A model generated the notes under the pieces. The model was not told the origin of the DNA. It searched no databases and worked only from the letters and a program-made list of their open reading frames with translations. Positions 2,667-53,971 of a stretch of DNA of 64,000 nucleotides are shown one piece after another. A program made the translations under genes and the position numbers. The stretch lies in contig NIVC01000491.1 of assembly GCA_002269645.1 (NCBI GenBank), positions 451,243-515,242 of the forward strand, given 5' to 3'. This DNA is from Macrostomum lignano. Lineage: Eukaryota. Numbering within the stretch: position 1 is the stretch's first letter; each line of letters starts with the position of its first letter.

Positions 2667-2759
2667 CTGCGGATGCGAATTGTGCGAGTAATTAGTCTGC
2701 TTTTTTAAAGTACTTGAACTTCAGAAGCTCGAACTCAGACTTCATATACCTAGGCTTCG

Positions 2760-3595
2760 AGTTCGAGTCTTAGGAGAGAGGTTCGGAGTTCGAGTCTCAG
2801 GAGAAAGGTTCGGAGTTCGAGTCTTAGGAGAGGTTCGGAGTTTGAGTCTCAGGAGAGATTCAGAGTTCGAGTCTCAGGAGAGATTCAGAGTTCGAGTCTC
2901 AAGAGAGGTTCGAAGTTCGAGTCTCAGGAGAGATTCAGAGTTCGAGTCTCAAGAGAGGTTCGAAGTTCGAGTCTCAGCGGACATGTGCAATTTGAGTCTT
3001 AGGAGAGGTTCGGAGTTCGAGTCTTAGGAGAGGTTTGGAGTTCGAGTCTTAGGAGAGGTTCGGAGTTCGAGTCTCAGGAGAGAGGTTCGGAGTTCGAGTC
3101 TCAGGACAGGTTCGGAGTTCGAGTCTCAGGAGAAAGGTTCGGAGTTCGAGTCTCAGGAGAGATTCAGAGCTCGAGTCTCAAGAGAGGTTCGAAGTTCGAG
3201 TCTCAGCGGACATTTGCAATTTGAGTCTTAGGAGAGGTTCGGAGTTCGAGTCTTAGGAGAGATTCGGAGTTCGAGTCTTAGGAGAGATTCGGAGTTCGAG
3301 TCTTAGGAGAGGTTCGGAGTTCGAGTCTTAGGAGAGATTCGGAGTTCGAGTCTTAGGAGAGGTTCGGAGTTCGAGTCTTAGGAGAGGTTCGGAGTTCGAG
3401 TCTTAGGAGAGGTTCGGAGTTCGAGTCTTAGGAGAGGTTCGGAGTTCGAGTCTCAGGAGAGATTCAGAGTTCGAGTCTCAAGAGAGGTTCGGAGTTCGAG
3501 TCTCTGGAGAAAGGTTCGGAGTTCGAGTCTCAGGAGAGATTCAGAGCTCGACTCTCAAGAGAGGTTCGGAGTTCGAGTCTCAGGGGAGGTTCGAA
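2760..3595. repeat. ~25-bp minisatellite (TTCGGAGTTCGAGTCTTAGGAGAGG)n in FEN1 intron 3
   Basis: Tandem unit read directly, with TTA/TCA variants. Confidence 0.95.
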
Positions 3596-4147: not shown

Positions 4148-5040
4148 GGCGATGGAACAAATACACACTTCGAGAATCTCTAAAAGCGATGGAACAAAGA
4201 CACACTTCGAGAATCTCTAAAAGCGATGGAACAAAGACACAGTTCGAGAATCTCTAAAAGCGATGGAACAAAGACACACTTCGAGAATCTCTAAAGCGAT
4301 GGAACAAAGACACTTCGGGAATCTCTAAAAGCGATGGAACAAAGACACACTTTGAGAATCTCTAAGGCGATGGAACAAAGACACAGTTCAAGATTAAGAA
4401 TCTCTAAAAGCGATGGAACAAAGACACACTTTGAGAATCTCTAAGGCGATCGAACAAAGGCACTTCGAGAATCTCTAAAAGCGATGGAACAAAGACACAG
4501 TTCAAGAATCTCTAAAAGCGATAGAACAAAGACACACTTTGAGAATCTCTAAGGCGATGGAACAAAGGCACTTCGAGAATCTCTAAAAGCGATGGAACAA
4601 AGACAGTTCAAGAATCTCTAAAAGCGATGGAACAAAGACACACTTTAAGAATCTCTAAGACGATGGAACAAAGACACACTTGAAGAATCTCTAAAGCCAT
4701 AGAAAAAAGACACACTTCGAGAATCTCTAAAAGCGATAGAACAAAGACACACTTTGAGAATCTCTAAGGCGATGGAACAAAGACACAGTTCAAGAATCTT
4801 TAAACGATGAAACAAAGACACTTTGAGAATCTCTAAAAGCGATGGAACAAAGACACACTTCAAGAATCTCTAAAAGCGATGGAACAAAGACACAGTTCAA
4901 GAGTCTCTAAAAAGCGATGGAACAAAGACACAGTTCAAGAGTCTCTAAAAAGCGATGGAACAAAGACACTGAGAATCTCTAAGGCGATGGAACAAAGACA
5001 CAGTTCGAGAATCTCTAAAACGATGGAACAAAGACACACT
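4148..5040. repeat. ~37-bp minisatellite (GCGATGGAACAAAGACACACTTCGAGAATCTCTAAAA)n in FEN1 intron 3
   Basis: Tandem unit read directly; ends ~15 nt from the exon 3 donor. Confidence 0.95.
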
Positions 5041-5055
5041 TAAAAGGCAACTCAC

Positions 5056-5514
5056 TTGATATTTGTCCTTGTCCAAATGCTTGAGCACATTGTCGATATC
5101 GCCATACTTTCGCAGAAACTCCAACGCCTTTTTCGGCCCGACGCCGCGAACCGAGTCGCAATAGTCGCAGCCAAGCAAGATGCACAGGTCAACAAACTGC
5201 TCCTGACTCATGCTCATCTCCTGCAACGCCTTGTCCAGTCGGAACTCTTGAATCGGCATCTTCTTGGCTTCGCTGAATGTTAGCCGACGCAACAGAACCG
5301 GTGCACCGAATGTCAGCGCGTCCATGTCTTCGGTGCCTACAGCGAAGACGCGACCGCTACGCACCAGCTCCGCGCACTGCGCCTCCGCCTCTGACGGCGC
5401 CTGAAGCCAGGGCACGCCCATCAGGGTGAGAAGTCGCTGACATTCTGCCGCGTGCTGTTTCGTCACCTTCACAAGGCGCTTGGACATGCGCTCCGCTTCC
5501 TCCGCATCTTCTAC
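5056..5514 (-). CDS. FEN1: FEN1 exon 3 (I-domain: [27 protein letters not shown]3TH GVGPKKA)
   Basis: Acceptor CCCCAG|GTA, donor CAA|GTGAGT; 153 codons with XPG/FEN1 catalytic motifs. Confidence 0.97.
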
Positions 5515-5559
5515 CTGGGGAGTGAGGGTGATTGGGAATAAAGGTTTCACTCAGGGGTG

Positions 5560-6042
5560 GGTAGCTAACATCTAGATCTATAGAGTATCTAACATCTAGA
5601 TCTATAGGGTAGCTAACATCTAGATCTATAGGGTAGCTAACATCCAGATCTATAGGGTAGCTAACATCTAGATCTATAGAGTAGCTAACATCTAGATCTA
5701 TAGGGTAGCTAACATCCAGATCTATAGGGTAGCTAACATCTAGATCTATAGGGTAGCTAACATCTAGATCTATAGGGTAGCTAACATATAGATCTATCGA
5801 GTAGCTAACATCTACATCTATAGGGTAGCTAACATCTAGATCTATAGGGTAGCTAACATATAGATCTATAGGGTAGCTAACATCTAGATCTATAGGGTAG
5901 CTAACATCTAGATCTATAGTGTTAACATCTAGATCTATAGGGTAGCTAACATCTAGATCTATAGGGTAGCTAACATATAGATCTATAGGGTAGCTAACAT
6001 CTAGATCTATAGGGTAGCTAACATCTAGATCTATAGTGTTAA
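5560..6042. repeat. 24-bp minisatellite (ACATCTAGATCTATAGGGTAGCTA)n, left half of an interrupted array
   Basis: Same array resumes in the same orientation at 25153. Confidence 0.95.
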
Positions 6043-6279
6043 CTAGCAATCTAGTGCGGCCCCCCTTCGGGGCGCCCAATAAGAAAGGAGCAAAAATAGT
6101 TCATGGAAAACAATAAAAAAACACATTTTCTTAAACACTAATTCCTTCTTCACATTTTAAAAATCACCTTATTCGTGTAAAATTGTCACGGACTAAGATG
6201 TTTGCAAAATTAAAAAATCACTTTTTCTCTAAAATTAACAAACAGTCAACAAAATATCGTTTCCCTAAATAGAAAATAT

Positions 6280-6610
6280 TCCCAAGACAGCAAGCAACCC
6301 CCTCCAAAAGTGAACAATCGCAGATAGCAAGCATCCTCTAATGCTCATAGCAAGAATCACCACAGATAGCAAGCATCTGCAGATTAGCAAGCACCCCTCC
6401 CAGATATTATAGAAGCATCCACCCAGATAGCAAGCATCCCCCAGATATTATAGAAGCAACCACCCAGATAGCAAGCATCCTGCAGATAGCAAGAATCCCT
6501 AAATAGCAAGCATCCCTGGATTGAAAGAATCCCATGCATGTAGCCAGCACCCCCTCTCCCAAATAGCAAGTATCCCCCCTCGAGAGCAAGCATCCACGAG
6601 ATAGCAAGTA
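6280..6610. repeat. Degenerate repeat with core CAGATAGCAAGCATCC
   Basis: Core motif recurs about 8-10 times at irregular spacing. Confidence 0.75.
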
Positions 6611-6719
6611 GCTAGTGCACATGTTACTTCCGCTAATGCAATAATCGCTTTCTCAGGTTGTGCAACAATCCACGTCTCAGCGAGCGCAATAATCTTTTTT
6701 TTAGACAGCGCAGTAATCA

Positions 6720-9700
6720 GCTTCTCAGCTAGTGCAATAATACTTGGTTTATTAATAGCAATAATCCTTGATTAATCAAGTGCAATAATCCTTGGTTTAT
6801 CAAGTGCAATAATCCTTGGTTTATCAAGTGCAGTAATCTTTGGCTTATAAAGTGCAATAATCCTTGGTTTATTAAGTGCAATAATCCTTTGTTTATCAAG
6901 TGCAATAATCCTTGGTTTATCAAGTGCAATAATCCTTTGTTTATCAAGTGCAATAATCCTTGGTTTATTAAGTGCAATAATCCTTGGTTTATCAAGTGCA
7001 ATAATCCTTGGTTTATCTAGCGCAGTAATCCTTGGCTTATCAAGTGCAATAATCCTTGGTTTATCAAGTGCAATATTTGTTTATCAAGTGCAATAATCCT
7101 TGGTTTATCAAGTGAAATAATCCTTGGTTTATCAAGTGCAATAATCATTGGCTTATCAACTGCAATAATCCTTGGTTTATCAAGTGCAATAATCCTTGGT
7201 TTATCTAGCGCAGTAATCCTTGGCTTATCAAGTGCAATAATCCTTGGTTTATCAAGTGCAATATTTGTTTATCAAGTGCAATAATCCTTGGTTTATCAAG
7301 TGAAATAATCCTTGGTTTATCAAGTGCAATAATCATTGGCTTATCAACTGCAATAATCCTTGGTTTATCAAGTGCAATAATCATTGGCTTATCAAGTGCA
7401 ATAATCCTTGGTTTATCAAGTGCAATAATCATTGGCTTATCAACTGCAATAATCCTTGGTTTATCAAGCGCAGTAATCCTTGGCCTATCAAGTGCAATAA
7501 TCCTTGGCTTATCGAGTGCAGTAATCCTTGGTTTGCCAAGAGCAATAATCCTTGGTTTATCGAGTGCAGTAATCCTTAGTTTTCCAAGTGCAGTAATCCT
7601 TGGTTTATTAAGAGCAATAATCCTTGGCTTATCGAGTGCAGTAATCCTTGGTTTGCCAAGAGCAATAATCCTTGGTTTATCGAGTGCAGTAATCCTTAGT
7701 TTTCCAAGTGCAGTAATCCTTGTTTATTAAGAGCAATAATCCTTGGTTTATCGAGTGCAGTAGTCCTTGGTTTATTAATAGCAATAATCCTTGAATAATC
7801 CAGTGCATTAATCTCTGGCTTATCAAGTGCAACATTCTTTACTATCAAGTGCAATAATCCATGGCTTATCAAGCTCTGTAATCCTTGGCTTATCAAGTGC
7901 AATAATCCTTGGTTTATCAAGTGCAATAATCCTTTGTTTATCAAGTGCAGTAATCCTTGGCCTATCAAGTGCAATAATCCATGGCTTATCAAGCGCTGTA
8001 ATCCTTGGCTTATCAAGTGCAATAATCCTTGGTTTATCAAGTGCAATAATCCTTGGTTTATCAAGTGCAATAATCATTTGTTTATCAAGTGCAATAATCC
8101 TTGGTTTATCAAGCGCAGTAATCTTTGGCTTATCAAGTGCAATAATCCTTGGTTTATCAAGTGCAATAATCCTTGGTTTATCAAGTGCAATATTTGTTTA
8201 TCAAGTGCAATAATCCTTGGTTTATCAAGTGAAATAATCCTTGGTTTATCAAGTGCAATAATCCTTGGTTTATCAAGTGCAGTAATCCTTAGTTTTCCAA
8301 GTGCAGTAATCCTTGGTTTGCCAAGAGCAATAATCCTTGGTTTATCGAGTGCAGTAATCCTTAGTTTTCCAAGTGCAGTAATCCTTGGTTTATTAAGAGC
8401 AATAATCCTTGGCTTATCAAGTGCAGTAGTCCTTGGTTTATTAATAGCAATAATCCTTGAATAATCCAGTGCAACATTCTTTACTATCAAGTGCAATAAT
8501 CCATGGCTTATCAAGCGCTGTAATCCTTGGCTTATCAAGTGCAATAATCCTTGGTTTATCAAGTGCAATAATCCTTGGTTTATCAAGTGCAATAATCCTT
8601 GGTTTAACAAGTGCAATAATCCTTGGTTTATCAAGTGCAATAATCCTTGGTTTATCAAGTGCAATAATCCTTTGTTTATCAAGTGCAATAATCCTTGGTT
8701 TATCAAGTGCAATAATCTTTGGTTTATCAAGTGCAATAATCCTTGGTTTATCAAGTGCAGTAATCCTTGGCCTATCAAGTGCAATAATCCTTGGTTTATC
8801 AAGTGCAGTAATCTTTGGCCTATCAAGTGCAATAATCCTTGGTTTATCAAGTGCAATAGTCCTTGGTTTATCAAGTGCAGTAATCCTTGGTTTTCCAAGT
8901 GCAATAATCCTTGGCTTCTTGAGTGCAGTAATCCTTGGTTTTCCAAGTGCAATAATCCTTGGCTTCTTGAGTGCAGTAATCCTTGGTTTATCAAGTGCAG
9001 TAATCTTTGGCTTATAAAGTGCAATAATCCTTGGTTTATCAAGTGCAATAATCATTGGCTTATCAACTGCAATAATCCTTGGTTTATCAAGCGCAGTAAT
9101 CCTTGGCCTATCAAGTGCAATAATCCTTGGCTTATCGAGTGCAGTAATCCTTGGTTTGCCAAGAGCAATAATCCTTGGTTTATCGAGTGCAGTAATCCTT
9201 AGTTTTCCAAGTGCAGTAATCCTTGGTTTATTAAGAGCAATAATCCTTGGCTTATCGAGTGCAGTAATCCTTGGTTTGCCAAGAGCAATAATCCTTGGTT
9301 TATCGAGTGCAGTAATCCTTAGTTTTCCAAGTGCAGTAATCCTTGGTTTATTAAGAGCAATAATCCTTAGTTTATCGAGTGCAGTAGTCCTTGGTTTATT
9401 AATAGCAATAATCCTTGAATAATCCAGTGCATTAATCTCTGGCTTATCAAGTGCAACATTCTTTACTATCAAGTGCAATAATCCATGGCTTATCAAGCTC
9501 TGTAATCCTTGGCTTATCAAGTGCAATAATCCTTGGTTTATCAAGTGCAATAATCCTTTGTTTATCAAGTGCAGTAATCCTTGGCCTATCAAGTGCAATA
9601 ATCCATGGCTTATCAAGCGCTGTAATCCTTGGCTTATCAAGTGCAATAATCCTTGGTTTATCAAGTGCAATAATCCTTGGTTTATCAAGTGCAATAATCA

Positions 9701-10390
9701 TTTGTTTATCAAGTGCAATAATCCTTGGTTTATCAAGCGCAGTAATCTTTGGCTTATCAAGTGCAATAATCCTTGGTTTATCAAGTGCAATAATCCTTGG
9801 TTTATCAAGTGCAATAATCCTTGGTTTATCAAGTGCAATATTTGTTTATCAAGTGCAATAATCCTTGGTTTATCAAGTGAAATAATCCTTGGTTTATCAA
9901 GTGCAATAATCCTTGGTTTATCAAGTGCAGTAATCCTTAGTTTTCCAAGTGCAGTAATCCTTGGTTTGCCAAGAGCAATAATCCTTGGTTTATCGAGTGC
10001 AGTAATCCTTAGTTTTCCAAGTGCAGTAATCCTTGGTTTATTAAGAGCAATAATCCTTAGCTTATCAAGTGCAGTAGTCCTTGGTTTATTAATAGCAATA
10101 ATCCTTGAATAATCCAGTGCAACATTCTTTACTATCAAGTGCAATAACCCATGGCTTATCAAGCGCTGTAATCCTTGGCTTATCAAGTGCAATAATCCTT
10201 GGTTTATCAAGTGCAATAATCCTTGGTTTTCCAAGTGCAGTAATCCTTGGTTTATTAATAGCAATAATCCTTGGCTTCTTGAGTGCAGTAATCCTTGGTT
10301 TGCCAAGAGCAATAGTCCTTGGTTTATCGAGTGCAGTAGTCCTTGGTTTATTAATAGCAATAATCCTTGGCTTATCGAGTGCAGTAATCT
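6720..10390. repeat. 24-bp satellite (TCAAGTGCAATAATCCTTGGTTTA)n, ~3.7 kb, with higher-order duplication
   Basis: Unit read directly; the unique marker CAGTGCATTAATCTCTGGC occurs at 7801 and 9425 (offset 1624). Confidence 0.97.
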
Positions 10391-10460
10391 AAGTGTTTTT
10401 ATTTAGTCCTTTAATAAAACCTTCTAATAAAAATTTTTACACTACTACTTTTAAACTACT

Positions 10461-10520
10461 TAGATTCGAACCTAGGTCGCTGCATTAGCAGTCTGGTCTG
10501 TTCAGCTCTAGGCTAGCTCT
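10461..10520 (-). mobile_element. Possible degenerate tRNA-derived SINE head
   Basis: Minus strand GAGAGCTAGCCTAGAG...CTGCTAA...GGTTCGAATC gives A-box-like and B-box motifs; no full cloverleaf. Confidence 0.35.
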
Positions 10521-11229
10521 CATCGAAGTTATCAGTGATGTTGTACCACTTATATAATTCAACACTCACACCAAGTCAGGTAGAGTAAAAAGTCTCACGA
10601 AGCAGTTATGACATAATCAATTTCTTAGGCAAGTCAGTACCAGTGTCTATGAAAGTTTACAATATGGTTACGTAATATAAATTCAGTACTGCGCTATGCT
10701 TTCACACTCAAAGCTGTGACGCAATTCAATTGAGTGTCAAATTCAGCCAGTACACAGACGATAAATAAAGTGTATTGTGATGCAATCTATTTCAGAATCA
10801 GAATTCAACCAGTCAGTTTTTCTGCTAGCATTCTTACAATGCATTTCAAGTCGAAAGAGCTGCTTGACCTTTGCAAAAAAGCATGTTTTTCGAATATTTA
10901 ATCCCTTTAACATTGAGCAATTTCTTAGCCACGATGCATGTACCGTCACGGAATAATTTCTGATCGAACAGTGCAGGTTCGAAGAAAATCGGTTCAGCCG
11001 TTTTTGCTAAAATCGATCACACACACACACACGCACACACAAACAGACCATTTTTAGTATATTACGAGTGGAACTCCTCCTTCGGAGGAGAAAGGGGAAG
11101 AACTCCCATCACCGGAATTCTATTCCCTGAAATATCCATCAACTGAAATTCCATGTCTTTAACCCTATCTTCCAAATCGTCTCCAAATTCTTTACAAAAT
11201 CTTTCAAAGACCATAGCTCAAAGACTCTT

Positions 11230-12345
11230 ACGTCTCTCATATCTACTCTCTCCTCTCTTCGCTATTATCGTGACTCGCTTCTCTCTCCTCTCTCTCATCT
11301 CATCTCTACCCCTACTCTCTTATTTATCTCTACTCCCTTATTTATCTCTTCTCCCTCGTCTTTCGTCTGTACCCTATCCTGTCTACTCTCCTATCTTCTA
11401 TCTTATCTCTCCCCTTTTCTCTCCTCTCTCATATCTAATCTCTAATCACTTATCTATCGTCTCCGCTCTACTTTCTCTCTTCTTTTTTCTCTCTTCTCTC
11501 TGCTCTCATTTCTCGTATCTCTTATACGCTCTCACCCTCTCCTTTCTTATCTCCCATCTTTCTTCCCTCCTTTCTACTGCATCACCTGTCTCCTCTCTTC
11601 TCTTTTCTCTCCTCTCCATTCTCTCTTCTCTACTCTCATCTCCCCTCATCTCTTCTCTAATCTCTAATCTCTTCTCTCTCTTATTTTCTCACTCATCTCT
11701 TTTCTCATTGCATCTCTCATCTCTCCTCTCTCTCTCTCCTCTCATCTGTACTATCTTTTTTATCTCTTCTCCCAGGTCTTTCAAATTTACTCTCTCCTGT
11801 CTCCTCTCTCCCCTCGTCTTTCCTCTCTCATATCTCTTCTCTACTCACTTATATATTCTCTCTCCTCTGCTCCCCTTTTACACTTTGCTATATGCTCTCA
11901 CTCTCACCCTCCCCTTTCTTATCTGCTGTTTTTACACTCCTTTCTACCACCTGTCTCCTCTCGTTTCTCTCCTCTCTGCACTCTCATCTTTACCCTCTTC
12001 TTTCTCCTCACTACTTTCTTCTCTTAAATCTCTGATCTCTGATCTTTCATCTCTCTCCTCTCACCTCTCACCTCTCTCCTCTCTTTCCTCTCTTCTATTG
12101 CCTCTGTACGCTCTTGTCCCTCCTTTCTTCTCCATCCTGTCTCCTCTCTGCAATCTCATATCTCCTCTCTCATATCCTCTCCCTTCATCTCCTCTCTCCT
12201 CTTCTCTTCTCTCTCCTTCGTTCCCGCCTTACTTTCCTCTTCTCTCCCATCTGTCATGTCTAATCTCTCCACTCATTTCTACTCTGTTTTCTATCATCTC
12301 ATCTCTCTTCTCTTTTCATTCTTCTCTTTACTCTCTTCTCTGACT
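11230..12345 (+). repeat. CT-rich polypyrimidine tract of B unit 1; homologous tracts at ~14010-14885, 16360-17360, 18845-19770, 21680-22690
   Basis: About 1 kb almost G-free on the + strand; source of the Leu/Ser ORFs. Confidence 0.95.
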
Positions 12346-12880
12346 GATTGAAGATGCCAAATCCATCAAGATCCTCTCCGCGAAGCAGAAATCCTGTCCG
12401 TGCAACTGAAAACCATCGAAATCCTCTCCGTGAAACTGGACTCCTTCGAAATCCTCTCCTTGAAACTTAAATCCATCAAAATCGTCTCCATAAAACAGAA
12501 ATCAATCATAAATTATCTCCGCGAAACAGAAATCCTCTCCGTGAAGCTGAACATCATCGAAATCCTCTCCGTGAAACTGAACACCTTCGAAATCCTCTCC
12601 GTGAAACTGAACACCTTCGAAATCCTCTCCTTGAAACTTAAATCTATCAAAATCGTCTCCATAAAGCAGAAATCAATCATAAATTTAACTCCGCGAAACA
12701 GAAATCCTCTCCGTGAAGCTGAACATCATCAAAATCCTCTCCGTGAAACTGAGCACCATCGAAATCCTCTCCACGAAACAGAAATCCTCTTTGTCAAAAT
12801 TAAAACATTGAAATCGTCTCCGCTAAACTGGACTCAATCAATTTTTTCCGTCAAACAACTCAACTCTCCGGATTCATTGG

Positions 12881-15800
12881 TTAGGGTTAGGGTTAGGGTT
12901 AGAACTACGCACAGCTTCGTGTTAAAAGGCACTGATAAACTATTGAACTAATTGAATCAATTCATTGCGCAACCGATTTCACAGTCAGTCAGTATCAGTC
13001 TCAGTTAAAGTTAACAAAAACATTGCGCAATCTAAATCAACCCTCCAATACAAAGCAACTGACCCCCTTCCTATACACAGCGCCAGTTGGAAGTCGAAAC
13101 CCCCAACTTTATCTCTCACCTCTCGCCAAAATGAGTACAATCTTTGCAGAAAGTTTAAAGTATGGAAATAGTTTTTGCAATGCAGAGCTTTTAGTTTTCA
13201 TATTTGAAGCAAACAATTTATATCCCTGAAATCAGCTTTGCAAGTTCTTTCCAGCAATATAAATTTTTTCTCTCAAAGTTAAAAACTCGAGCAACAGTTT
13301 GCGTTTGAAACTTTCTGATTTAAAGCATTGAAATATCGATTGTACGTTCACTGCCTGCTAAAGAGGCCCGCAAGTTTATGCATTGAATTTCAACGTTCAA
13401 CAAAATCACAGGGCTGCCTATTGAAAATTAGAACACAAATCTTTGCGCAATTGTCTATACAGTCAGCCAGTGAGCCAGGGTCCGATTGTACACAGGCAGC
13501 CATTTAGAACGCCCCATCCCCCCACTGGAGAGAAAATACACTGCAGAGATAGGGAAAAGTTGTGGCGCAATCACTTGAAATTCATGCAAATTTTCAGCTC
13601 CAAGCAGAAAGAGGGGACAATTAAGATTATCAAAGGTCAAGACCGCCGTTTTCTGCTTTTTTGAGGATTTAAGAAATTAAAATTTCAGAATTAAAATAGC
13701 CTATAGCCGACCTCGGATAATTTCCAATCTTCCCATATAAGTTTCAACGCTGAGTTGCCACTATTCAAGGAGGAGTTGTCGAAATGACAGACAGACACAC
13801 AGACAGACAGACAAACAACGCGTCAACTTTAGTATATAGAGTGGAACTCCTCCTTCGGAGGAGAAAGGGGAAGAACTCCCATCACCGGAATTCTGAAGGG
13901 GAAGAACTCCCATCAGCTGAAATTCCATGACTTGAATCCCATCTTCCAAATCATCTCCAAATCCTCTACAATGCATTTCAATTACCGGATATCTTGTTTT
14001 CCCTATTTGCAAAAACTCACTGGCATTGTCCAGACTCGGACTCTCATGTCTCTGCTCTCATTTCTCATATCTCATATCTTTCATATCACTCTCTCCTTTC
14101 TTATCTTCCATCTTTCTGCCCTCCTTACTACCGTCTCTTGTCACCTCTCTTTTCTCTCCTCTCCATTCTTCTCTCCTTTCCTTTCTCCTCTCATCTTCTC
14201 CCCTCTCTTCTCAAATCTCTCTCTCTCTTTTCTCACTTATCTCTTTTCTATTTGCATCTCTCATCTCTCATCTCTCTCCTCTCATCTGTACTATCTTATT
14301 TATCTCTTCTCCCAGGTCTTTCAAATTTACTCTCTCCTGTCTCCTCTCTCCCCTCGTCTCTCCTCTCTCATATCTCTTCTCTACTCACTTATCTATTCTC
14401 TCTACTCTGCTCCCCTTTTACACTTTCCTATATGCTCTCACTCTCACCATCTCCTTTCTTATCTCCTGTTTTTTACACCCCTTTCTACCACCTGTCTTCT
14501 CTTGTTTCTCTCCTCTCTGCACTCTCATCTTTACCCTCTTCTTTCTCCTCACTACTTTCTTCTCTTAAATCTCTGATCTCTGATCTTTCATCTCTCTCCT
14601 CTCAACTCTCACCTCTCTCCTCTCTTTCCTCTCTTCTATTGCCTCTGTGCGCTCTTATCCCTCTTTTCTTCTCTGTCCTGTCTCCTCTCTGCTATTTCAT
14701 ATCTCCTCTCTCATATCCTCTCCCTTCATCTCCTCTCTCCTCTTCTCTTCTCTCTCCTTCGTTCCCGCCTTACTCCCCTCTTCTCTCCCATCTGTCATGT
14801 CTAATCTCTCCACTCATTTCTACTCTGCTTTCTATCATCTCATCTCTCTTCTCTTTTCATTCTTCTCTTTACTCTCTTCTCTGACTGATTGAAGATGCCA
14901 AATCCATCAAGATCCTCTCCGCGAAGCAGAAATCCTGTCCGTGCAACTGAAAACCATCGAAATCCTCTCCGTGAAACTGGACTCCTTCGAAGTCCTCTCC
15001 TTGAAACTTAAATTTATCAAAATCGTCTCCAAAAAACAGAAATCAATCATAAATTATCTCCGCGAAACAGAAATCCTCTCCGTGAAGCTGAACATCATCG
15101 AAATCCTCTCCGTGAAGCTGAACACCATCGAAATCCTCTCCACGAAACAGAAATTTTCTCCGTCAAAATTAAAACATTGAAATCGTCTCCGCTAAACTTG
15201 ACTTAATCGAATTTTTTCCGTCAAACAACTCAACTCTCCGGATTCATTGGTTAGGGTTAGGGTTAGGGTTAGAACTGCGCACAGCTTCGTGTTAAAAAGC
15301 ACTGATAAAAATATTGAACTAATTGTATCAATTCATTGCGCAACCGATTTCACAGTCAGTCAGTATCAGTCTCAGTTAAAGTTAACAAAAACATTGCGCA
15401 ATCTAAATCAACCCTTCAATACACAGCAGCAGTGAGAAGTTGAACCCTCCCCCAACTTTATCTATTACGTCTCGCAAAACTGAGTACGATTTTTGCAGAA
15501 AGTTAAATGTATGGAAATAGTTTTTTAAATGCTGTGCTTTTTCTTTTCATATTTAAAGCAAACAACTTATATCCCCGAACTCAGCGTTGCAAGATCTTTC
15601 CAGCAATATCAGTTTCTCCTATCAAAGTTTAAAACTCGAGGAACAGTTAGCGTTTAAAACTGTCTGATTTATAGCATTGAAGTATCGAGTGTACGTTGAC
15701 TGCCTGCTTGCAAGTTGATGCATTGAATTTCAATGTCCAACAAATACACAGGGCTGCCCATTGAAAGGCAGGAAAACTTATCAGTAGCCATATCATTGCG

Positions 15801-18800
15801 CAATTATCTATACAGTCAGCCAGTGAGCCAGGGTCCAAGTGTACACACGCAGCCACTGAGAACGCTCCCACCCCCCACTGGAAAGAAAATACACTACAGA
15901 GATAGGGAAAAGTTGTGGCGCAATCACTAAAAATTCATGCATTTTTTCAGCTCCAAGCAGAAAGAGGGGACAATTAAGATTATCAAAGGTCAAGATTCAA
16001 GTTTTCTGCTTTTTTGAGGATCTAAGAAATTAAAATTTCAGAATTAAAATAGCCTATAGCCGACCTCGGATTATTTCCAATCTTCCCATATAAGTTTCAA
16101 CGCTGAGTTGCCACTATTCAAGGAGGAGTTGTCGAAATGACAGACAGACACACAGACAGACAGACAAACAACGCGTCAACTTTAGTATATATAGAAGTGG
16201 AACTCCTCCTTCGGAGGAGAAAGGGGAAGAACTCCCATCACCGGAATTCCATTCCCTGAATTATCCATCAACTGAAATTCCATGTCTTGAACCCCATCTT
16301 CCAAATCGTCTCCAAATTCTTTACAAACCTTTCAAAGACCATAGCTCAAAGACTCTTACGTCTCTCATATCTACTCTCTCCTCTCTTCGCTATTATCGTG
16401 ACTCGCTTCTCTCTCCTCTCTCTCATCTCATCTCTACCCCTACTCTCTTATTTATCTCTACTCCCTTATTTATCTCTTCTCCCTCGTCTTTCTTCTGTAC
16501 CCTCTCCTGTCTACTCTCCTATCTTCTATCTTATCTCTCCCCTTTTCTCTCCTCTCTCATATCTCATCTCTAATCACTTATCTATCGTCTCCGCTCTACT
16601 TTCTCTCTTCCCTTTTCTCTCTTCTCTCTGCTCTCATTTCTCGTATCTCTTATACGCTCTCAACCTCTCCTTTCTTATCTCCCATTTTTCTTCCCTCCTT
16701 TCTACTGCATCACCTGTCTCCTCTCCTCTCCATTCTCTCTTCTCTCCTCTCTCTCCTCTCATCTGTACTATCTTATTTATCTCTTCTCCCAGGTCTTTCA
16801 AATTTACTCTCTCCTGTCTCCTCTCTCCCTCGTCTTTCCTCTCTCATATCTCTTCTCTACTCACTTATCTATTCTCTCTCCTCTGCTCCCCTTTTACACT
16901 TTCGTATATGCTCTCACTCTCACCCTCTCCTTTCTTATCTCCTGTTTTTTACACTCCTTTCTACCACCTGTCTCCTCTCGTTTCTCTCCTCTCTGCACTC
17001 TCATCTTTACCCTCTTCTTTCTCCTCACTACTTTCTTCTCTTAAATCTCTGATCTCTGATCTTTCATCTCTCTCCTCTCACCTCTCACCTCTCTCCTCTC
17101 TTTCCTCTCTTCTATTGCCTCTGTACACTCTTATCCCTCCTTTCTTCTCTCTCCTGTCTCCTCTCTGCTATCTCATATCTCCTCTCTCATATCCTCTCCC
17201 TTCATCTCCTCTCTTCTCTTCTCTTCTCTCTCCTTCGTTCCCGCCTTATACTCCCCTCTTCTCTCCCATCTGTCATGTCTAATCTCTCCACTCATTTCTA
17301 CTCTGTTTTCTATCATTTCATCTCTCTTCTCTTTTCATTCTTCTCTTTACTCTCTTCTCTGACTGATTGAAGATGCCAAATCTATCAAGATCTTCTCCGC
17401 GAAGCAGAAATCCTGTCCGTGCAACTGAAAACCATCGAAATCCTCTCCGTGAAACTGGACTGCTTCGAAATCCTCTCCTTGAAACTTAAATCCATCAAAA
17501 TCGTCTCCATAAAGCAGAAATCAATCATTAATTATCTCCGCGAAACAGAAATCCTCTCCGTGAGGCTGAACATCATCAAAATCCTCTCCGTGAAACTGAA
17601 CACCATCGAAATCCTCTCCACGAAACAGAAATTCTCTCCGTCAAAATTAAAACATTGAAATCGTCTCCGCTAAACTGGACTCAATCGAATTTTTTCCGTC
17701 AAACAACTCAACTCTCCGGATTCATTGGTTAGGGTTAGGGTTAGGGTTAGGGTTAGGGTTAGAACTACGCACAGCTTCGTGTTAAAAGGCACTGATAAAA
17801 ATATTGAACTAATTGAATCAATTCATTGCGCAACCGATTTCACAGTCAGTCAGTATTAGTCTCAGTTAAAGTTAAAAAAAAGATTGCGCAATCTAAATCA
17901 ACCCTTCAATACACAGCAGCTGTGAGAAGTTAAACCCTCCCCCAACTTTATCTCTTACGTCTCGCAAAACTGAGTACAATTTATGCAGAAAGTTAAAAGT
18001 ATGGAAATAGTTTTTTAAATGCGGTGCTTTTTCTTTTCATATTTAAAGCAAACAACTTATATCCCTAAACTCAGCGTTGCAAGATCTTTCCAGCAATATA
18101 AGTCTCTCCTCTCAAAGTTTAAAACTCGAGGAACAGTTAGGGTTTGAAACTGTCTGATTTATAGCATTGAAGTATCGAGTGTACGTTCACTGCCTGCTTG
18201 CAAGTTGATGCATTGAATTTCAATGTCCAACAAATACACAGGGCTGCCCATTGAAAGGCAGGAAAACTTATCAGTAGCCATATCATTGCGCAATTATCTA
18301 TACAGTCAGCCAGTGAGCCAGGGTCCAAATGTACACACGCAGCCACTGAGAACGCTCCCACCCCCCACTGGAAAGAAAATACACTACAGAGATAGGGAAA
18401 AGTTGTGGCGCAATCACTAAAAATTCATGCATTTTTTCAGCTCCGAGCAGAAAGAGGAGACAAATAAGATTATCAAAGGTCAAGATTTGAGTTTTCTGCT
18501 TTTTTGAGGATCTTAGAAATTAAAATTTCAGAATTAAAATAGCCTATAGCCGACCTCGGATAATTTCCAATCTTCCCATATAAGTTTCAACGCTGAGTTG
18601 GCACTATTCAAGGAGGAGTTGTCGAAATGACAGACACACAGACAGACACACAGACAAACAACGCGTCAACTTTAGTATATACGAGTGGAACTCCTCCTTC
18701 GGAGGAGAAAGGGGAAGAACTCTCATCACCGGAATTCCATTCCCTGAATTATCCATCAACTGAAATTCCATGTCTTGAACCCCATCTTCCAAATCGTCTC

Positions 18801-21800
18801 CAAATTCTTTACAAACCTTTCAAAGACCATAGCTCAAAGACTCTTACGTCTCTCAAATCTACTCTCTCCTCTCTTCGCTATTTTCGTGACTCGCTTCTCT
18901 CTCCTCTCTCTCATCTCATCTCTACCCCTACTCTCTTATTTATCTCTACTCCCTTATTTATCTCTTCTCCCTCGTCTTTCGTCTGTACCCTCTCCTGTCT
19001 ACTCTCCTATCTTCTATCTTATCTCTCCCCTTTTCTCTCCTCTCTCATATCTCATCTCTACTTACTTATCTATTGTCTCCGCTCTACTTTCTCTCTTCTC
19101 TCTGCTCTCATTTCTCGTATCTCTTATACGCTCTCACCCTCTCCTTTGTTATCTACCATCTTTCTTCCCTTTCTACTGCATCACCTGTCTCCTCTCCTCT
19201 CTTTTCTCTCCTCTCATCTCCCCTCATCTCTTCTCTAATCTCGAATCTCTCCTCTCTCATATCTCTTCTCTACTCACTTATCTATTCTCTCTCCTCTGCT
19301 CCCCTTTTACACTTTCGTATATGCTCTCACTCTCACCCTCCCCTTTCTTATCTCCTGTTTTTTACACTCCTTTCTACCACCTGTCTCCTCTCGTTTCTCT
19401 CCTCTCTGCACTCTCATCTTTACCCTCTTCTTTCTCCTCACTACTTTCTTCTCTTAAATCTCTGATCTCTGATCTTTCATCTCTCTCCTCTCACCTCTCA
19501 CCTCTCTCCTCTCTTTCCTCTCTCCTATTGCCTCTGTACGCTCTTATCCCTCCTTTCTTCTCTCTCCTGTCTCCTCTCTGCTATCTCATGTCTCCTCTCT
19601 CATATCCTCTTCCTTCATCTCCTCTCTCCTCTTCTCTTCTCTCTCCTTCGTTCCCGCCTTACTCCCCTCTTCTCTCCCATCTGTCATGTCTAATCTCTCC
19701 ACTCATTTCTACTCTGTTTTCTACCATCTCATATCTCTTCTCTTTTCATTCTTCTCTTTACTCTCTTCTCTGACTGATTTAAGATGCCAAATCCATCAAA
19801 ATCCTCTCCGCGAAGCAGAAATCCTGTCCGTGCAACTGAAAACCATCGAAATCCTCTCCGTGAAACTGAACTCCTTCGAAATCCTCTCCTTGAAACTTAA
19901 ATCCATCAAAATGGTCTCCATAAAACATAAATCAATCATAAATTATATCCGCGAAACAGAAATCCTCTCCGTGAAGCTGAACATCATCGAAATCCTCTCC
20001 GTGAAACTGAACACCATCGAAATCCTTTCCACGAAACTGAACACCATCGAAATCCTCTCCACGAAACAGAAATCCTCTCCGTCAAAATTAAAACATTGAA
20101 ATCGTCTCCGCTAAACTGGACTCAATCGAATTTTTTGCCGTCAAACAACTCAACTCTCCGGATTCATTGGTTAGGGTTAGGGTTAGGGTTAGAACTACGC
20201 ACAGCTTCGTGTTAAAAGGCACTGATAAACTATTGAACTAATTGAATCAATTCATTGTGCAACCGATTTCACAGTCAGTCAGTATCAGTCGCAGTTAAAG
20301 TTAACAAAAACGTTGTGCAATCTAAATCAACACTCCAATACACAGCAGCAGTGAGAAGTTGAACCCTCCCCCAACTTTATCTATTACGTCTCGCAAAACT
20401 GAGTACGATTTTTGCAGAAAGTTAAAAGTATGGAAATAGTTTTTTAAATGCTGTGCTTTTTCTTTTCATATTTAAAGCAAACAACTTACATCCCCGAACT
20501 TAGCGTTGCAAGATCTTTCCAGCAATATAAGTTTCTCCTCTCAAAGTTTAAAACTCGAGGAACAGTTAGCGTTTGAAACTGTCTGATTTATAGCATTGAA
20601 GTATCGAGTGTACGTTGACTGCCTGCTTGCAAGTTGATGCATTGAATTTCAATGTCCAACAAATACACAGGGCTGCCCATTGAAAGGCAGGAAAACTTAT
20701 CAGTAGCCATATCATTGCGCAATTATCTATACAGTCAGCCAGTGAGCCAGGGTCCAAGTGTACACACGCAGCCATTTAGAACGCCCCATCCCCCCACTGG
20801 AGAGAAAATACACTACAGAGATAGGGAAAAGTTGTGGCGCAATCACTTGAAATTCATGCAAATTTTCAGCTCCAAGCAGAAAGAGGGGACAATTAAGATT
20901 ATCAAAGGTCAAGATTCAAGTTTTCTGCTTTTTTGAGGATCTTAGAAATTAAAATTTCAGAATTAAAATAGCCTATAGCCGACCTCGGATAATTTCCAAT
21001 CTTCCCATATAAGTTTCAACGCTGAGTTGGCACTATTCAAGGAGGAGTTGTCGAAATGACAGACACACAGACATACAGACAAACAACGCGTGAACTTTAG
21101 TATATGTAGATAGAAGAGATAGCCATATCATTGCGCAATTATCTATACAGTCAGCCAGTAAGCCAGGGTCCAAGTGTACACACGCAGCCACTGAGAACGC
21201 TCCCACCCCCCACTGGAAAGAAAATACACTACAGAGATAGGGAAAAGTTGTGGCGCAATCACTAAAAATTCGTGCATTTTTTCAGCTCCAAGCAGAAAGA
21301 GGGGACAAATAAGATTATCAAAGGTCAAAACCGCCGTTTTCTGCTTTTTTAGGGATCTTAAAATGTAAAAATGAAAGATTAAAATAGCCTAAAGCCATCC
21401 TCGGAAAATTTGCAGTTTTCCAATATAAGTTTCAACGCTGAGTTGCAAGTATTCTAGGAGGAGTTATGCAACAGACAAACAAACACACAAACATCGCACC
21501 AACTTTAGTATATACGAGAGTGGAACTCCTCCTTCGGAGGAGAAAGGGGAAGAACTCCCATCACCGGAATTCCATTCCCTGAAATATCCATCAACTGAAA
21601 TTCCATGTCTTGAACCCTATCTTCCAAATCGTCTCCAAATTCTTTACAAAACCTTTCAAAGACCATAGCTCAAAGACTCTCACGTCTCTCATATCTACTC
21701 TCTCCACTCTGTGCTATTATCGTGACTCTCTTCTCTCTCCTCTCTCTCATCTCATCTCTACCCGTACTCCCTTATTTATGTTTTCTCCCTCGTCTTTCGT

Positions 21801-24108
21801 CTGTACCCTCTCCTGTCTCTTGTCTCCTCTCTTCTCTCATATCTCTCCTCTTCACTTCTGTCTCCTGTCTTCTCTCTTCTCTCTTATCTCTCCCTCTTCT
21901 CTCCTCTTTTATATGTCATCCCTATTCACTTATCTATCGTCTCTCTTAACCCTCTCTCTCTTCTCTTTTCTTTCCTCTCTGCTCTCATTTCTCATATCTC
22001 ATATACGCTCTCACACTCCACTTACTTGTCTCCAATCTTTCTTTCCTCCTTTCCACTTTTCCCTGTCTCTTCTCTTCTCTCTTTTCTATCCTCTCCATTC
22101 TCTCTTTTCTCCTCCCCTTGCTCCTTTTATCTTCTCCCCTCTCTTCTCTAATCTCTTCTCTCTTCTCTCTTATGTTCTCACTCATCTCTTATCATCGCAT
22201 CTCTCATCTCTCCTCTCCTCACTACTTTCCTCTCTTAACTCTCTTATCTATTTCATCTCTCTCCTCTCTCCTCTTTCTCTTCTCCTCTCGCTTCTTCTCT
22301 CGCTTCTCTCTCCTATCTCTCCTCTCATCTCTACTACCGTATTTATATCTTCTAACTGGTCCTTCGTCTCTACTCTCTCCTTTCTCCTTTCTCCCCTCTT
22401 TTCTCCTTTCTTGTCTCTCCTGTCTCCTCTCCTCTCTCATCCCTCATCCTCTCATCTCACTCTTTCTTTCTCCTCTACTCTCCCCTCTCTTCTATTTTCT
22501 CTGTACGCTCTTATCCCTAATCTATTTTCTCTCCTCTCTCCTCTTTTCTTCTCTCTCCCTCTTCGTTCCCGCCTAAATCCCCTCTTCTCTCCAATCTGTC
22601 ATGTCTAATATCTCCACTTATTTCTACTCTGTTTTCTATCATCTCATCTCTCTTCTGCTTTCATTCTTCTCTTTACTCTTTTCTCTGACTGATTGAAGAT
22701 GCCAAATCCATCAAGATCCTCTCCGCGAAGCAGAAATCCTGTCCGTGCAACTGAAAACCATCGAAATCCTCTCCGTGAAACTGGACTCCTTCGAAATCCT
22801 TTCCGTGAAACTGAAAACCATCGAAATTCTCTCTTTTAAACTGGACTCAATCGAAATTTTCTCCGTCAAAAAAATAAATATCAGGATTCATTGGTTAGGG
22901 TTATTGTTAGGGTTAGGGTTACGGTTAAAGCTACACACAGCTGCGTGTTCAAATAAAAAATTGAACCAATTGAATCAATTGATTGCGCAACCGATTTCTC
23001 AGTCAGTCAGTATCAGTCTCAGTTAAAGTTAACAAAAACATTGCGCAATCTAAATCAACCCTCCAATACACAGCAGCAGTGAGAAGTTGAACTCTCCCCC
23101 CAACTTTATCTATTACGTCTCGCAAAACTGAGTACAATTTTTGCAGAAAGTTAAAAGTATGGAAATAGTTTTTTTCAATGCTGTGCTTTTTCTTTTCATA
23201 TTTAAAGCAAACAATTTATATCCCTGAAATCAGCTTTGCAAGTTCTTTCTAGCAATATTAATTTTTTCTTTCGAAGTTAAAAACTCGAGCAACAGTTTGC
23301 GTTTGAAACTTTCTGATTTAATGCATTGAAATATCAATTGTACGTTCACTGCCTGCTAAAGAGGCCCGCAAGTTTATGCATTGAATTTCAAGGTTCAACA
23401 AAACACAGGGCTGCCTATTGAAAATTAGAACACAAATCTTTGCGCAATTGTCTATAAAGTCAGCCGGTGAGCCAGGGTCCGATTGTACACATGCAGCCAT
23501 TTAGAACGCCCCATCCCCCCACTGGAGAGAAAATACACTGCAGAGATAGGGAAAAGTTGTGGCGCAATCACTTGAAATTCATGCAAATTTTCAGCTCCAA
23601 GCAGAAAGAGGGGACAATTAAGATTATCAAAGGTCAAGACCGCCGTTTTCTGCTTTTTTGAGGATCTTAGAAATTAAAATTTCAGAATTAAAATAGCCTA
23701 TAGCCGACCTCGGATAATTTCCAATCTTCCCATATAAGTTTCAACGCTGAGTTGGCACTATTCAAGGAGGAGTTGTCGAAATGACAGACAGACAGACAGA
23801 CAAACAACACGTCAACTTTAGTATATACGAGGCCAACTCCTCCTTCGGAGAAGAAAGGGGAAGAACTCCAATCAGCGGAATTCCATTCCCTGAACTCCAT
23901 AAGCGGAATCCCATTTTCCAACACCTCTCCGCGCAACAGAAATCGTCTCCGTGAAACTGAACACTATCGAAATCCTCTCCGTGAAACTGAACACCATCGA
24001 AATATTCTCCGCGAAATAGAAATCCTCTCCGTGAAACTGGACTAAATCGAAATTTCTACGTCAAATAGCCCAGCTCTCAGAATTCATTGGTTAGGGTTAG
24101 GGTTAGGG
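12881..24108 (+). repeat. Interstitial telomere-like TTAGGG runs, one per B unit (12881 x3, 15251 x3, 17729 x5, 20171 x3, 22895 degenerate, 24091 x3)
   Basis: Read directly; always preceded by ATTCATTGG. Confidence 0.9.
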
Positions 24109-25152
24109 TTGACAGCTGCGTGTTGAAAGGCGCCGTAAAAACATTGAACCAATTAAATTGCGCAACTTATTTCTCAGGCAGTCAGTATCAGCCTCAGTTA
24201 AAGTTAACAAAAAGATTGCGCAATCTAAATCAACCCTCAAATACACAGCAACCGACCCCCCTTCCAATACGCAGTGCAGCTAGAAATTGAACCCCCCCCA
24301 CCAACTATTGGGGGGTCGGTCGAACTCCCATTGAACTCCAAAATGAGCACAATCTTTGCAGAAAGCTAAAAGTATGAAAATCTTTTCTTGAATGCTGTGA
24401 ATTTAATTTTCATATTTAAAGCAAAAAACTTATATCCCCGAACTCATTGCAGCAAGATCTTTCCAGCAATATAAGTCTCTCCTCTCTAAGTTCAAAACTC
24501 GAGCAACAGTTAGTGTTTGAAACTTTCTGATTTTAAGCATTGAAATATCGAGTGTACGTTCACTGCCTGCTAAAGATGCTCGCAAGTTTATGCATTAAAA
24601 TGCACTGAATTTCACTGTGCAAAAAATACACAGGGCTTCCTGTTAAAAAACAGAACACAAATAGTTGCGCAATTGTCTATAAAGTCAGTCAGTGAGCCAG
24701 GGTTCAAGTGTACACACGCAGCCACTGAGAACGCGACCATCCCCCCACTTGAGAGAAAATACACTGCCAAGATAGAAAAATTTTATGGCGCAATCACTAA
24801 AATTGATGCAAATTTTCAGCTCCAAGCAGAAAGAGGGGACAATTAAGATTATCAAAGGTCAAGACCGCCATTTTCTGCTTTTTTAGGGATCTTAAAAATT
24901 GAAAATGAAAGATTAAAATAGCCTAAAGCCATCCTCGGAAAATTTGCAGTTTTCCCATATAAGTTTCAACGCTGACTTGCAAGTATTCTAGGAGGAGTTA
25001 TCCAACAAACACACACACACACAGACAAACAACGCACCAACTTTAGTATTAAGATATTCTAGGAGGAGTTATCCAACAAACACACACACACACAGACAAA
25101 CAACGCACCAACTTTAGTATTAAGATAGAAGATAGATAGATAGAGAAGAAGA

Positions 25153-25640
25153 CATCTAGATCTATAGGGTAGCTAACATCTAGATCTATAGGGTAGCTAA
25201 CATCTAGATCTATAGGGTAGCTAACATCTAGATTTATAATGTTAACATCTAGATCTATAGGGTATCTAACATCTAGATCTATAAGGTATCTAACATCTGG
25301 GTCTATAGGGTATCTAACATCTAGATCTATAGTGTATCTTACATATAGATCTATAGGGTATCTAACATCTAGATCTATAGGGTAGCTAACATCTAGATCT
25401 AAAGTTTAACATCTAGATCTATAAGGTATCTGATATCTAGATCTATCTAACATCTGGATCTATAGGGTATCTAACATCTAGATCTATAGGGTATCTGATA
25501 TCTAGATCTATAGGGTATCTAACATCTAGATCTATAGTGTATCTAACATCTAGATCTACAGGTTATCTAACGTCAAGATCTACAGTTTATCTAAGGTGTA
25601 AGATCTAAAGGTTGTCTAACATCTAGATCTTAGGATATCT
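25153..25640. repeat. 24-bp minisatellite, right half of the interrupted array, degenerating toward exon 2
   Basis: Same unit and orientation as 5560-6042. Confidence 0.93.
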
Positions 25641-25843
25641 AACATCTAAATTCAGTGAATCTGAGACAGATCTAAATGCAGGATATTTGAGGCAAATCTA
25701 TATTTATTCTGTAGGATTTCTACCTTTAGACTAATCAAAAAGATCACTTGACATTTTTGGGATTATAATCCCAAAATCAAAGTGCTTACTAAAATAGAAT
25801 ACAACAATCAACTCTTAAGAATACCCATCCCCTTTTTACAAAC

Positions 25844-35576: not shown

Positions 35577-36197
35577 ATGCGCCTGACGCTGCCGCCAGAG
35601 ATGCCGTTGCCGGCAAAGGAGAGCTTCAGCCTAGCACCAGTCAGCACAGCCGACTTTGTGAGGCTCGCCCAACAGTCACCGGGCGGGAAAGCGCTGGGTC
35701 TGGACGAGGTGCCCATCGAGGCGCTGCGCATCCACTGTGTGGCCAGTGAGGTCGCCAAAGTGATGAATCGCGTGCTCTTCGGTGAGGAGGCACCCAACGA
35801 ATGGACCACGGCGCACATCGTCGCAGTTCCTAAGAAGCGGGGCACCACGAGGCTTGAAGAGCATCGAGGCATCTGCCTTCAGTCATGCGCTGCGAAGCTG
35901 TTCAATCGGATGCTGTTATCGCGGTTGCAACCAGTGCTGGATCCGTACCTGCGTCCTGAGCAGAACGGCTTCGGGCCCCATCGCGGCACAGTGACGCAGA
36001 TACTGGCTCTTCGCCGGGTCATCGATGAGACGCGGACACACCAATCCATCCTGATTGTTATCTTCATAGATTTCAAGAAGGCATTCGACTCGGTCGTCAG
36101 GTCTGTGCTCCCAAAGGTGCTCCGTGCGGACAACGTGCCAGAGCAGCTAAGTTCCGCCATCATGGCGATGTACCGCAATACGACAGCTGCTGTTTCA
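35577..36197 (+). mobile_element. Non-LTR retrotransposon (RTE-like) reverse transcriptase fragment, truncated at both ends
   Basis: GKALGLD, IVAVPKK, HRGICL, AKLFNRMLL, EQNGF, FIDFKKAFDSV are RT N-terminal motifs; the YADD region is absent. Confidence 0.88.
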
Positions 36198-53944: not shown

Positions 53945-53971
53945 CCTCTTGCTTCCCGCATCCGCCCACAG

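Follow-up and report, generated by a model that had tools for sequence, protein, structure and literature searches.

A stack of two Helitron families in a FEN1 intron of Macrostomum lignano, most likely grown by insertion into resident 5' ends

Tandem arrays of Helitrons are routinely taken as the footprint of rolling-circle replication; targeted self-insertion can give the same picture. Which of these routes is recorded in a given array? The question is raised by a 64,000-nucleotide (nt) stretch of the flatworm Macrostomum lignano (assembly GCA_002269645.1, contig NIVC01000491.1, positions 451,243 to 515,242), which we call the window and in whose own numbering all coordinates are given. On the minus strand of the window, positions 25152-6043 form a 19,110-bp block, which is a stack of non-coding, non-autonomous Helitrons consisting of seven units of one family (B) and one element of another (A). 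With due caution, we consider it probable that this stack was built by newcomers that entered the resident copy at a single, fixed position at its very 5' tip.

The components of the block and the host satellite on its two sides are listed below in the order in which they are read on the minus strand. A slash within a sequence marks a joint or an insertion point, and heads without their first 4 nt are called beheaded.

25153-25648, minus strand: upstream part of the host 24-nt satellite, unit TATAGATCTAGATGTTAGCTACCC; the flank ends ...TATAGATCTAGATG at 25153
25126-25152, minus strand: outer TCT-TCTA run TCTTCTTCTCTATCTATCTATCTTCTA, Helitron-borne; the insert as a whole has its 5' end at the first TC of this run (25152)
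23828-25125, minus strand: B unit U1, short form without the GA-rich region; head TCTTAATAC; 3' hairpin degraded; end GGCCTCG
21515-23827, minus strand: B unit U2; beheaded, TATATAC right after the CTCG of U1; 3' end CACTCTCG
21120-21514, minus strand: B unit U3a; beheaded, TATATAC; 3'-truncated after about 394 nt at ...GATATGGCTA
21107-21119, minus strand: inner TCT-TCTA run TCTCTTCTATCTA; its final TCTA is the tip of U3b
18682-21110, minus strand: B unit U3b; head TCTACATATAC, tip kept; 3' end hairpin plus TTCCACTCG
16196-18681, minus strand: B unit U4; beheaded, TATATAC; 3' end CCACT, final CG missing
13839-16195, minus strand: B unit U5; intact head TCTATATATAC; variant tail; 3' end CCACTC, final G missing
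11065-13838, minus strand: B unit U6; beheaded, TATATAC, or TCTATATAC after CCAC; 3' end CACTCG
6043-11064, minus strand: element A, non-autonomous Helitron; beheaded head TAATATACTAAAAATGG; (GT)n; 24-nt satellite; hairpin followed by GCACTAGATTGCTAG
5559-6042, minus strand: downstream part of the host satellite; starts TTAACAC

The head inventory was anchored on the invariant core ATACTAAA, and nine heads were obtained. The strings quoted in a previous sequence-only reading of this DNA are all present on the minus strand where that reading had placed them: TCTATATATACTAAAG begins at 16195, TATATACTAAAG at 18681, 21514 and 23827, each time right behind ...CTCG, and TAATATAC at 11064, right behind ...CACTCG. 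The heads it quoted were right, but its five B units were too few, as seven are present. It had overlooked the heads at 13838 (joint CCACTC/TATATAC) and 21110, together with the 3'-truncated U3a, the second TCT-TCTA run and the exact 71-nt duplication of the outermost head. The head at 16195, which it described as intact, is indeed complete, but the 3' end preceding it lacks the last CG (CCACT/TCTA...). Similarly, the outermost segment 25152-25126 does read TCT TCT TC TCTA TCTA TCTA TCT TCTA and is followed by TCTTAATACTAAAG, but the head found there is TCTTAATAC, not TCTATATATAC. An assembly artefact is unlikely, the units differing by at least 2% everywhere and also in structure. The nine heads and the sequences that precede them are the following.

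Anchor 25120, minus strand: U1, ...TCTATCTTA/ATAC
Anchor 25049, minus strand: U1, second copy of the exact 71-nt duplication, head as at 25120
Anchor 23824, minus strand: U2, GGCCTCG/TAT/ATAC
Anchor 21511, minus strand: U3a, CACTCTCG/TAT/ATAC
Anchor 21103, minus strand: U3b, GGCTA/TCTCTTCTATCTACAT/ATAC; head given as CATATACTAAAG after the inner run
Anchor 18678, minus strand: U4, CACTCG/TAT/ATAC
Anchor 16188, minus strand: U5, CCACT/TCTATAT/ATAC
Anchor 13835, minus strand: U6, CCACTC/TAT/ATAC
Anchor 11060, minus strand: element A, CACTCG/TAAT/ATAC

The joint CTCG/TATATAC is found at U1-U2, U2-U3a and U3b-U4, and CTCG/TAATATAC at U6-A; the 3' end of each unit is followed by T (7/7). The joint of U6 can be read in two ways, as CCACTC/TATATAC or as CCAC/TCTATATAC. 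The intact tip TCTATATATAC offers three A/T positions, and all of the four or five beheadings are at the first of them. The three heads that were not overwritten by a 3' end (U5, U3b and U1) all keep the TC tip. At U4-U5 (CCACT/TCTATATATAC), and perhaps at U5-U6, the head is complete and the incoming 3' end is 2-3 nt short; such a joint could arise if integration took place precisely at the 5' boundary, or it could be an aberrant 3'-to-5' joint as in Helraiser circles. The head motif is enriched in the array above chance, and a search for solo heads elsewhere in the window, allowing up to 2 mismatches to the motif, gave chance-level matches only. A scan of the window for a GC-rich hairpin plus CT[ACG][AG] returned the B ends and otherwise only unrelated sites.

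One joint form links a U1-type tail with a U2-type head, the common tail with a U3a-type head, and the common tail with a U4-type head. The units differ by 2-26% depending on the segment, in a mosaic pattern, and have structural differences in addition. The heads of U1 and U3a are 93% identical to each other and about 80-84% identical to the remaining heads; U2 and U6 are alike (98-98.5% over the first 400 columns, 95% over the next 300); U3b, U4 and U5 represent a third head type (97-98%), and the tail of U5 is about 74% identical to the other tails. As the units are mosaics of several subfamilies and the head, core and tail trees disagree, a polar age order is not meaningful. The B-A joint is beyond the reach of rolling-circle replication of a single circle and of unequal exchange inside an array of B units, both of which would give like neighbours; thus repeated site-specific insertion is favoured. 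The sequence-only reading proposed that insertion into the resident 5' terminus had built at least some of the array, and this is supported by the occurrence of the same joint across subfamilies and between B and A.

The outer boundaries of the block can be defined precisely. A single 24-nt satellite, in one orientation, flanks it at 25153-25648 and 5559-6042. When the upstream flank ...TATAGATCTAGATG is joined to the downstream flank TTAACAC/TATAGATC..., the result is TATAGATCTAGATGTTAACAC, a short variant of the satellite unit that is also found elsewhere in the host array, and the empty site is exactly restored. It follows that the insert is 25152-6043, 5'-TC...CTAG-3', with a T as 3' flank and without target duplication; its phase is ambiguous by one T. 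It also follows that the outer TCT-TCTA run arrived in Helitron DNA and that its first TC is a Helitron 5' end. A host (GATA/TCTA)n microsatellite as the source of the run is ruled out by the same reconstruction. The outer boundary had earlier been taken for an A/T site, the reconstructed empty site is G/T.

Repeats of the type (TCTA)x2 or longer occur on the element strand only twice in the 64 kb, at 25144 and 21114. Both lie directly upstream of the free heads U1 and U3b, which are the only B heads not abutted by a B 3' end, and this association of TCTA runs with free heads is real. Helitron integration leaves the target DNA undeleted, therefore any tip that a head has lost must be located upstream of the newcomer. 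Removal of U1 joins ...TCTA to TATATAC and yields TCTATATATAC, identical to the intact head of U5. The single odd TCT in the run stands at the place predicted for the tip of U3a; the tip of U1, which alone shares the subfamily of U3a, is TCT-T. The TCT-TCTA run is likely, though not proven, to consist of displaced tips. The match of four tips to four beheaded heads, to which attention had been drawn earlier, does not hold up well: there are 5 orphan TCTA (4 outer, 1 inner) and 4 or 5 beheaded heads, and because the parsing is flexible, the match carries little weight.

The first 71 nt of the outermost B head are exactly duplicated (25125-25055 and 25054-24984). The duplication can be phased to begin exactly at the TC of U1 (24984-25127), and this start marks the TC as a real initiation or joining point. 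Each of the two 5'-partial copies (71 nt and 394 nt) stops at a TA that is followed by C in intact copies; here the TC of a new head comes next. A published model that combines self-insertion with chimeric mobilisation would fit the shape of both.

The history that we propose starts from what the sequence shows, namely the unit inventory, the joints, the heterogeneity of the units and the exact empty site, which places the run in mobile DNA. The satellite-carrying Helitron A would have entered the 24-nt intronic satellite first. Copies of family B, belonging to at least three head subfamilies and having several tail variants, would then have integrated serially and in one orientation, each of them at a fixed position in the resident, between the TC...TCTA tip (TCT in one subfamily) and TA(A)TATAC. 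Each newcomer would have beheaded the resident and pushed the resident's tip upstream, and the displaced tips, together with A's own TC-rich leader, would make up the outer run. We infer this order of events, and we suppose that a transposase bound at the resident 5' end would direct integration there. In more general terms, the flatworm Helitron transposase may prefer the 5' ends of resident Helitrons as a position-specific target, 4 nt inside the terminus; arrays would then arise by serial self-insertion and not as concatemers, each newcomer would disable its predecessor by the loss of the TC tip, and the row of tips would record the hits. We regard this wider proposal as tentative, possible rather than probable.

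Several points weigh against this history. The evidence comes from one locus, the 5' flank of the block is G and not the canonical A, and the B units end in CTCG instead of CTRR (R is A or G). The beheading of U3a would have taken place at T/T, and the targets of the 5'-partial copies would have been A/C. The joints U4-U5 and U5-U6 and both 5'-partial copies need extra events. With regard to the runs, their TCT and TC pieces (TCTTCTTC, TCTCT) are not explained by displaced tips, and both runs consist of TC or TCT units followed by TCTA units, as would one shared intrinsic leader. A count of one tip per insertion needs a chosen parsing and is off by one or two if U3a landed in the pile; the length of (TCTA)n can also shift by slippage.

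It is conceivable that the true 5' end of B is TATATAC and that TCTA is a preferred target just 5' of it. The run would then be a pre-existing leader of A with several TCTA/T sites, and the B copies would have landed at different positions in the run or exactly at the previous 5' boundary; there would be no pile of tips, and the number of TCTA would be unrelated to the number of insertions. A TCTA of this kind would be comparable to the fixed flanking tetranucleotide in IS200/IS605 and IS91 elements. Read in this way, CTCG/TATATAC is a simple end-to-end adjacency, CCACT/TCTA/TATATAC at U4-U5 retains a single TCTA, the outer and the inner run resemble the halves of one TCT-then-TCTA tract split by U1-U3a, and the T on the 3' side is invariant. 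The empty site, however, shows that the run came with mobile DNA ending at the TC at 25152. Moreover, cleavage would have to occur at least 27 nt upstream of TAATATAC in A but immediately before the homologous TATATAC in B, which is inconsistent for matching heads. The 71-nt duplication starts at TC and not at TAATAC, and canonical Helitrons start with TC. We find a B terminus at TATATAC unlikely.

We give still less credence to the untargeted formation of multimers, with the first tandem copies coming either from rolling-circle replication of a circular intermediate or from read-through, then expansion by unequal crossing-over, and later divergence and gene conversion of the units. In that case complete joints CTCG/TCTATATATAC would have lost 2-4 nt later, and the run would be a slippage-prone leader. 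Tandem arrays and precise circle joints are established, about half of the Helraiser circle joints are aberrant (PMC5876387), and plant arrays with multiple 5' ends are, according to the summary of Xiong et al. 2016 given in PMC12628747, attributed to rolling-circle replication. Every joint observed here can be derived from the complete joint by a deletion of 2-4 nt, and the mosaic similarity is compatible with gene conversion. Yet the B-A joint has the same form as the B-B joints and is impossible to obtain from a B circle or from B-B crossing-over, and an identical loss of 4 nt would have to have recurred independently. Neighbouring units differ structurally (U1 without the GA-rich region, the tail of U5, at least three head types), and near-identical pairs of units are absent from the array. 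An even more remote explanation is that the stack was built elsewhere and transposed as a composite Helitron, from the outermost TC to the CTAG of A, through six internal B 3' ends. The 19,110-bp block does have perfect 5'-TC and CTAG-3' ends, its target is exactly restored, and the published model of Helitrons with multiple 5' termini (PMC5148889) is one of chimeras that are mobilised from an upstream 5' end through to a 3' end further downstream. However, six hairpin-plus-CTCG ends would have to be bypassed, and an early arrival of A, with the B copies added later at the site, would be expected to give the same end structure. It must be noted that such a transfer concerns the place of building, not its mode, and can be combined with the other explanations. 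Serial insertion into resident 5' ends remains the reading that we prefer.

The B units are 1.3-2.8 kb long and contain, in this order, the head, (GTCT)n that starts some 25 nt from the head, a unique stretch of about 1 kb, (CCCTAA)3-6, a 30-nt minisatellite, a GA-rich region of 1-1.3 kb, a 250-nt tail, the hairpin and CTCG; the GA-rich tract is absent from U1. The 3' terminus is CTCG, CTC or CT. The hairpin with a 7-bp stem and a GAA loop is present in 5/6 units and degraded in U1, and its fold was confirmed; the motif was counted 6 times on the element strand, the expected number being 0.19. The telomere-type (CCCTAA)3-6 occupies, on the element strand, the same internal position in every B unit. 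In all full B units an 11-nt sequence, AACTCCTCCTT, located 58-66 nt into the head window used, is complementary to the 3' arm of the 3' hairpin; no pairing of this kind between head and hairpin was found in element A.

12879-12902, 15249-15272, 17727-17762, 20169-20192 and 24089-24106, degenerate at about 22893-22927: (CCCTAA)n in B units
18691-18707, minus strand: representative B 3' hairpin CTCCTCCGAAGGAGGAG, 7-bp stem, GAA loop, 9 nt before the end
11074-11090, 13847-13863, 16203-16219, 21526-21542 and 23837-23853: further copies of the B 3' hairpin
18616-18626 with 18691-18701: example of the pairing of AACTCCTCCTT

Element A is a case of a satellite carried inside a Helitron: about 153 copies of a 24-nt unit, AGTGCAATAATCCTTGGTTTATCA, lie between the Helitron ends at 6731-10389. 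Its GC-rich 3' hairpin (6076-6058), which also has a GAA loop, is followed by GCACTAGATTGCTAG, and there are two candidates for the terminal CTAG, 6054-6051 and 6046-6043, the second of which is followed by T. A and B have in common the head TCTATA(A)TATACTAAA and a GAA-loop 3' hairpin followed by CACT[AC]G, where the CACTAG of A aligns with the CACTCG of B. The bodies of the two elements are unrelated.

The stack lies inside the second intron, of about 20.3 kb, of the flap endonuclease 1 (FEN1) gene and is oriented in the sense of the gene. A minus-strand exon at 4945-5550 has 100% identity to M. lignano FEN1 (UniRef A0A1I8FWP4), and tblastn with FEN1 proteins of other animals located exons on the minus strand at 30581-30495, 26110-25841, 5517-5053 and 2669-2310. 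The second intron is enlarged to about 20 kb by the Helitron stack and the host satellite. The public M. lignano FEN1 model, of 272 amino acids (aa), starts only with exon 3 and has no N-terminal XPG_N part, which is probably missing because of the large intron. Many short-unit satellites are spread across the window. Three of them, with 21-, 25- and 37-nt units (1386-2105, 2759-3593 and 4149-5041), lie in or near other FEN1 introns, and Helitron ends were not recognised next to these three. Further along, 52464-60371 on the plus strand contains axonemal dynein heavy chain exons (domains DHC_N2 and AAA_6), with satellites between them, including a GC-rich 16-nt array at 58099-59527. Of the open reading frames (ORFs) at 35577-36224 (plus strand) and 44920-45624 (minus strand), one has a reverse-transcriptase domain and the other a GIY-YIG domain; the two, on opposite strands, are likely remnants of Penelope-like retroelements.

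We file A and B as canonical-type (Helitron1, HLE1) non-autonomous Helitrons, with the caveat that B ends in CTCG and not in CTRR. The 5' TC is present at the start of the block and in the free B heads U5, U3b and U1, and absent from four or five internal heads. The 3' end is CTAG in A and CTCG, CTC or CT in B. The targets show no duplication, a T on the 3' side (7/7) and a G as the outer 5' flank, and the internal targets would be TCTA/T, in one case TCT/T. Pfam scans of 19 ORFs of the window found dynein, reverse transcriptase and GIY-YIG domains only. No Rep/helicase was seen in the 64-kb window, where the longest non-repeat ORF is at most 398 aa; no search for a partner was made in the rest of the genome. 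Identity with Helentrons or their HINE derivatives was ruled out, since a TT target is lacking and so are terminal subTIRs, the subterminal inverted repeats of 11-15 bp that in Helentrons lie 2-4 nt from the 5' end and pair with a repeat in front of the 3' palindrome. No complementarity to the last 150 nt was seen in the initial 57 nt of the head window, and the only match is that of AACTCCTCCTT at 58-66 with the hairpin arm; the site is G/T and becomes T/T only by a phase shift in which the TC start and the CTAG end are lost. The (GTCY)n, the central tandem repeats and the 3' palindrome of the Helentron type are present in B. A rolling-circle concatemer would consist of like units with complete joints; here only the head at U4-U5 is complete, and there the 3' end is 2 nt short.

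Searches outside the window were made in several collections. A scan of viral contigs with the head pattern found no B copy, and a metagenome scan gave 63 single 18-nt matches, which were due to chance, as blastn similarity to B or A was not extended in any of them. An exact-product look-up of a B-internal ORF gave no record. The search with FEN1 returned the M. lignano protein from UniRef only and no contig, and the scanned collections apparently do not contain the M. lignano genome. A literature search with the head sequences and the word Helitron gave no match, and publications dealing with M. lignano Helitrons were not found either.

If the proposed preference for resident 5' ends were true genome-wide, it would provide a sequence criterion for telling self-insertion from the rolling-circle route. 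It would also suggest a competition among Helitron copies in which a usable 5' end is left only to the copy that arrived last, and a simple path from dispersed Helitrons to long tandem repeats. The present locus may keep a readable trail of displaced tips.

It is useful to compare the stack with Helitrons described in other organisms. With the canonical HLE1 elements (Helibat, Helraiser) it shares the TC and CTAG ends of the block, the GC-rich hairpin 9-15 nt before the 3' end, the absence of target duplication, the T on the 3' side, the TA-rich 5' end and the lack of coding capacity. It differs from them in the CTCG of B, the G of the outer 5' flank, the internal satellites, the (GTCT)n, the telomere-like (CCCTAA)n and the lack of a Rep/helicase partner in the window. 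The Helentron-associated elements (HINE/DINE-1 and the oyster Cg_HINE; PMC4067079, PMC7492417) also have (GTCY)n near the 5' end, central repeats and a 3' palindrome, but the elements described here have no subterminal inverted repeats at the 5' terminus, and their target is not TT. Tandem arrays in bats and plants were attributed to rolling-circle replication in the accounts cited in PMC5876387 and, for Xiong et al. 2016, in PMC12628747. Such arrays are likewise head-to-tail and in one orientation, with some truncated units and extra 5' ends, whereas our units are heterogeneous and have their own 3' ends, the initial 4 nt of the head are missing at the joints, and one joint connects two families.

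A close parallel is provided by the FoHeli elements of Fusarium and Metarhizium, for which self-insertion, multiple 5' termini and tandem triplets were described (Chellapan et al. 2016, PMC5148889). A FoHeli4 copy had inserted just upstream of another copy's 5' end, at a distance of 2 bp, and the first 73 nt of FoHeli1 were found repeated (PMC5148889). What the two systems have in common is that one copy is inserted right at another copy's 5' end, or only a few bases away from it, and that a short 5' repeat stands in front of a complete copy (73 nt in FoHeli, 71 nt here). The same pair of alternatives, insertion into the 5' end twice or rolling-circle replication, was explicitly considered for FoHeli (PMC5148889). 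The FoHeli elements are, however, non-canonical (Helitron2-like), and no FoHeli case has six serial hits at a fixed position, a mixed-family stack or a run of tips. In a different context, insertion-site preference was reported to be the main source of tandem transposon dimers (McGurk and Barbash 2018, PMC5932611). There, as proposed here, it is site preference and not recombination that gives tandem copies able to seed satellites, but those are Drosophila elements with target duplications, not Helitrons, and their target is not the element's own terminus. In light of these comparisons, the stack neatly illustrates a behaviour of which Helitrons had been suspected before, and is not a new kind of element. 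What it adds is the mixed-family composition, six serial hits at one position, and the heterologous joint combined with an exact empty site, which together argue for insertion over concatemerisation.

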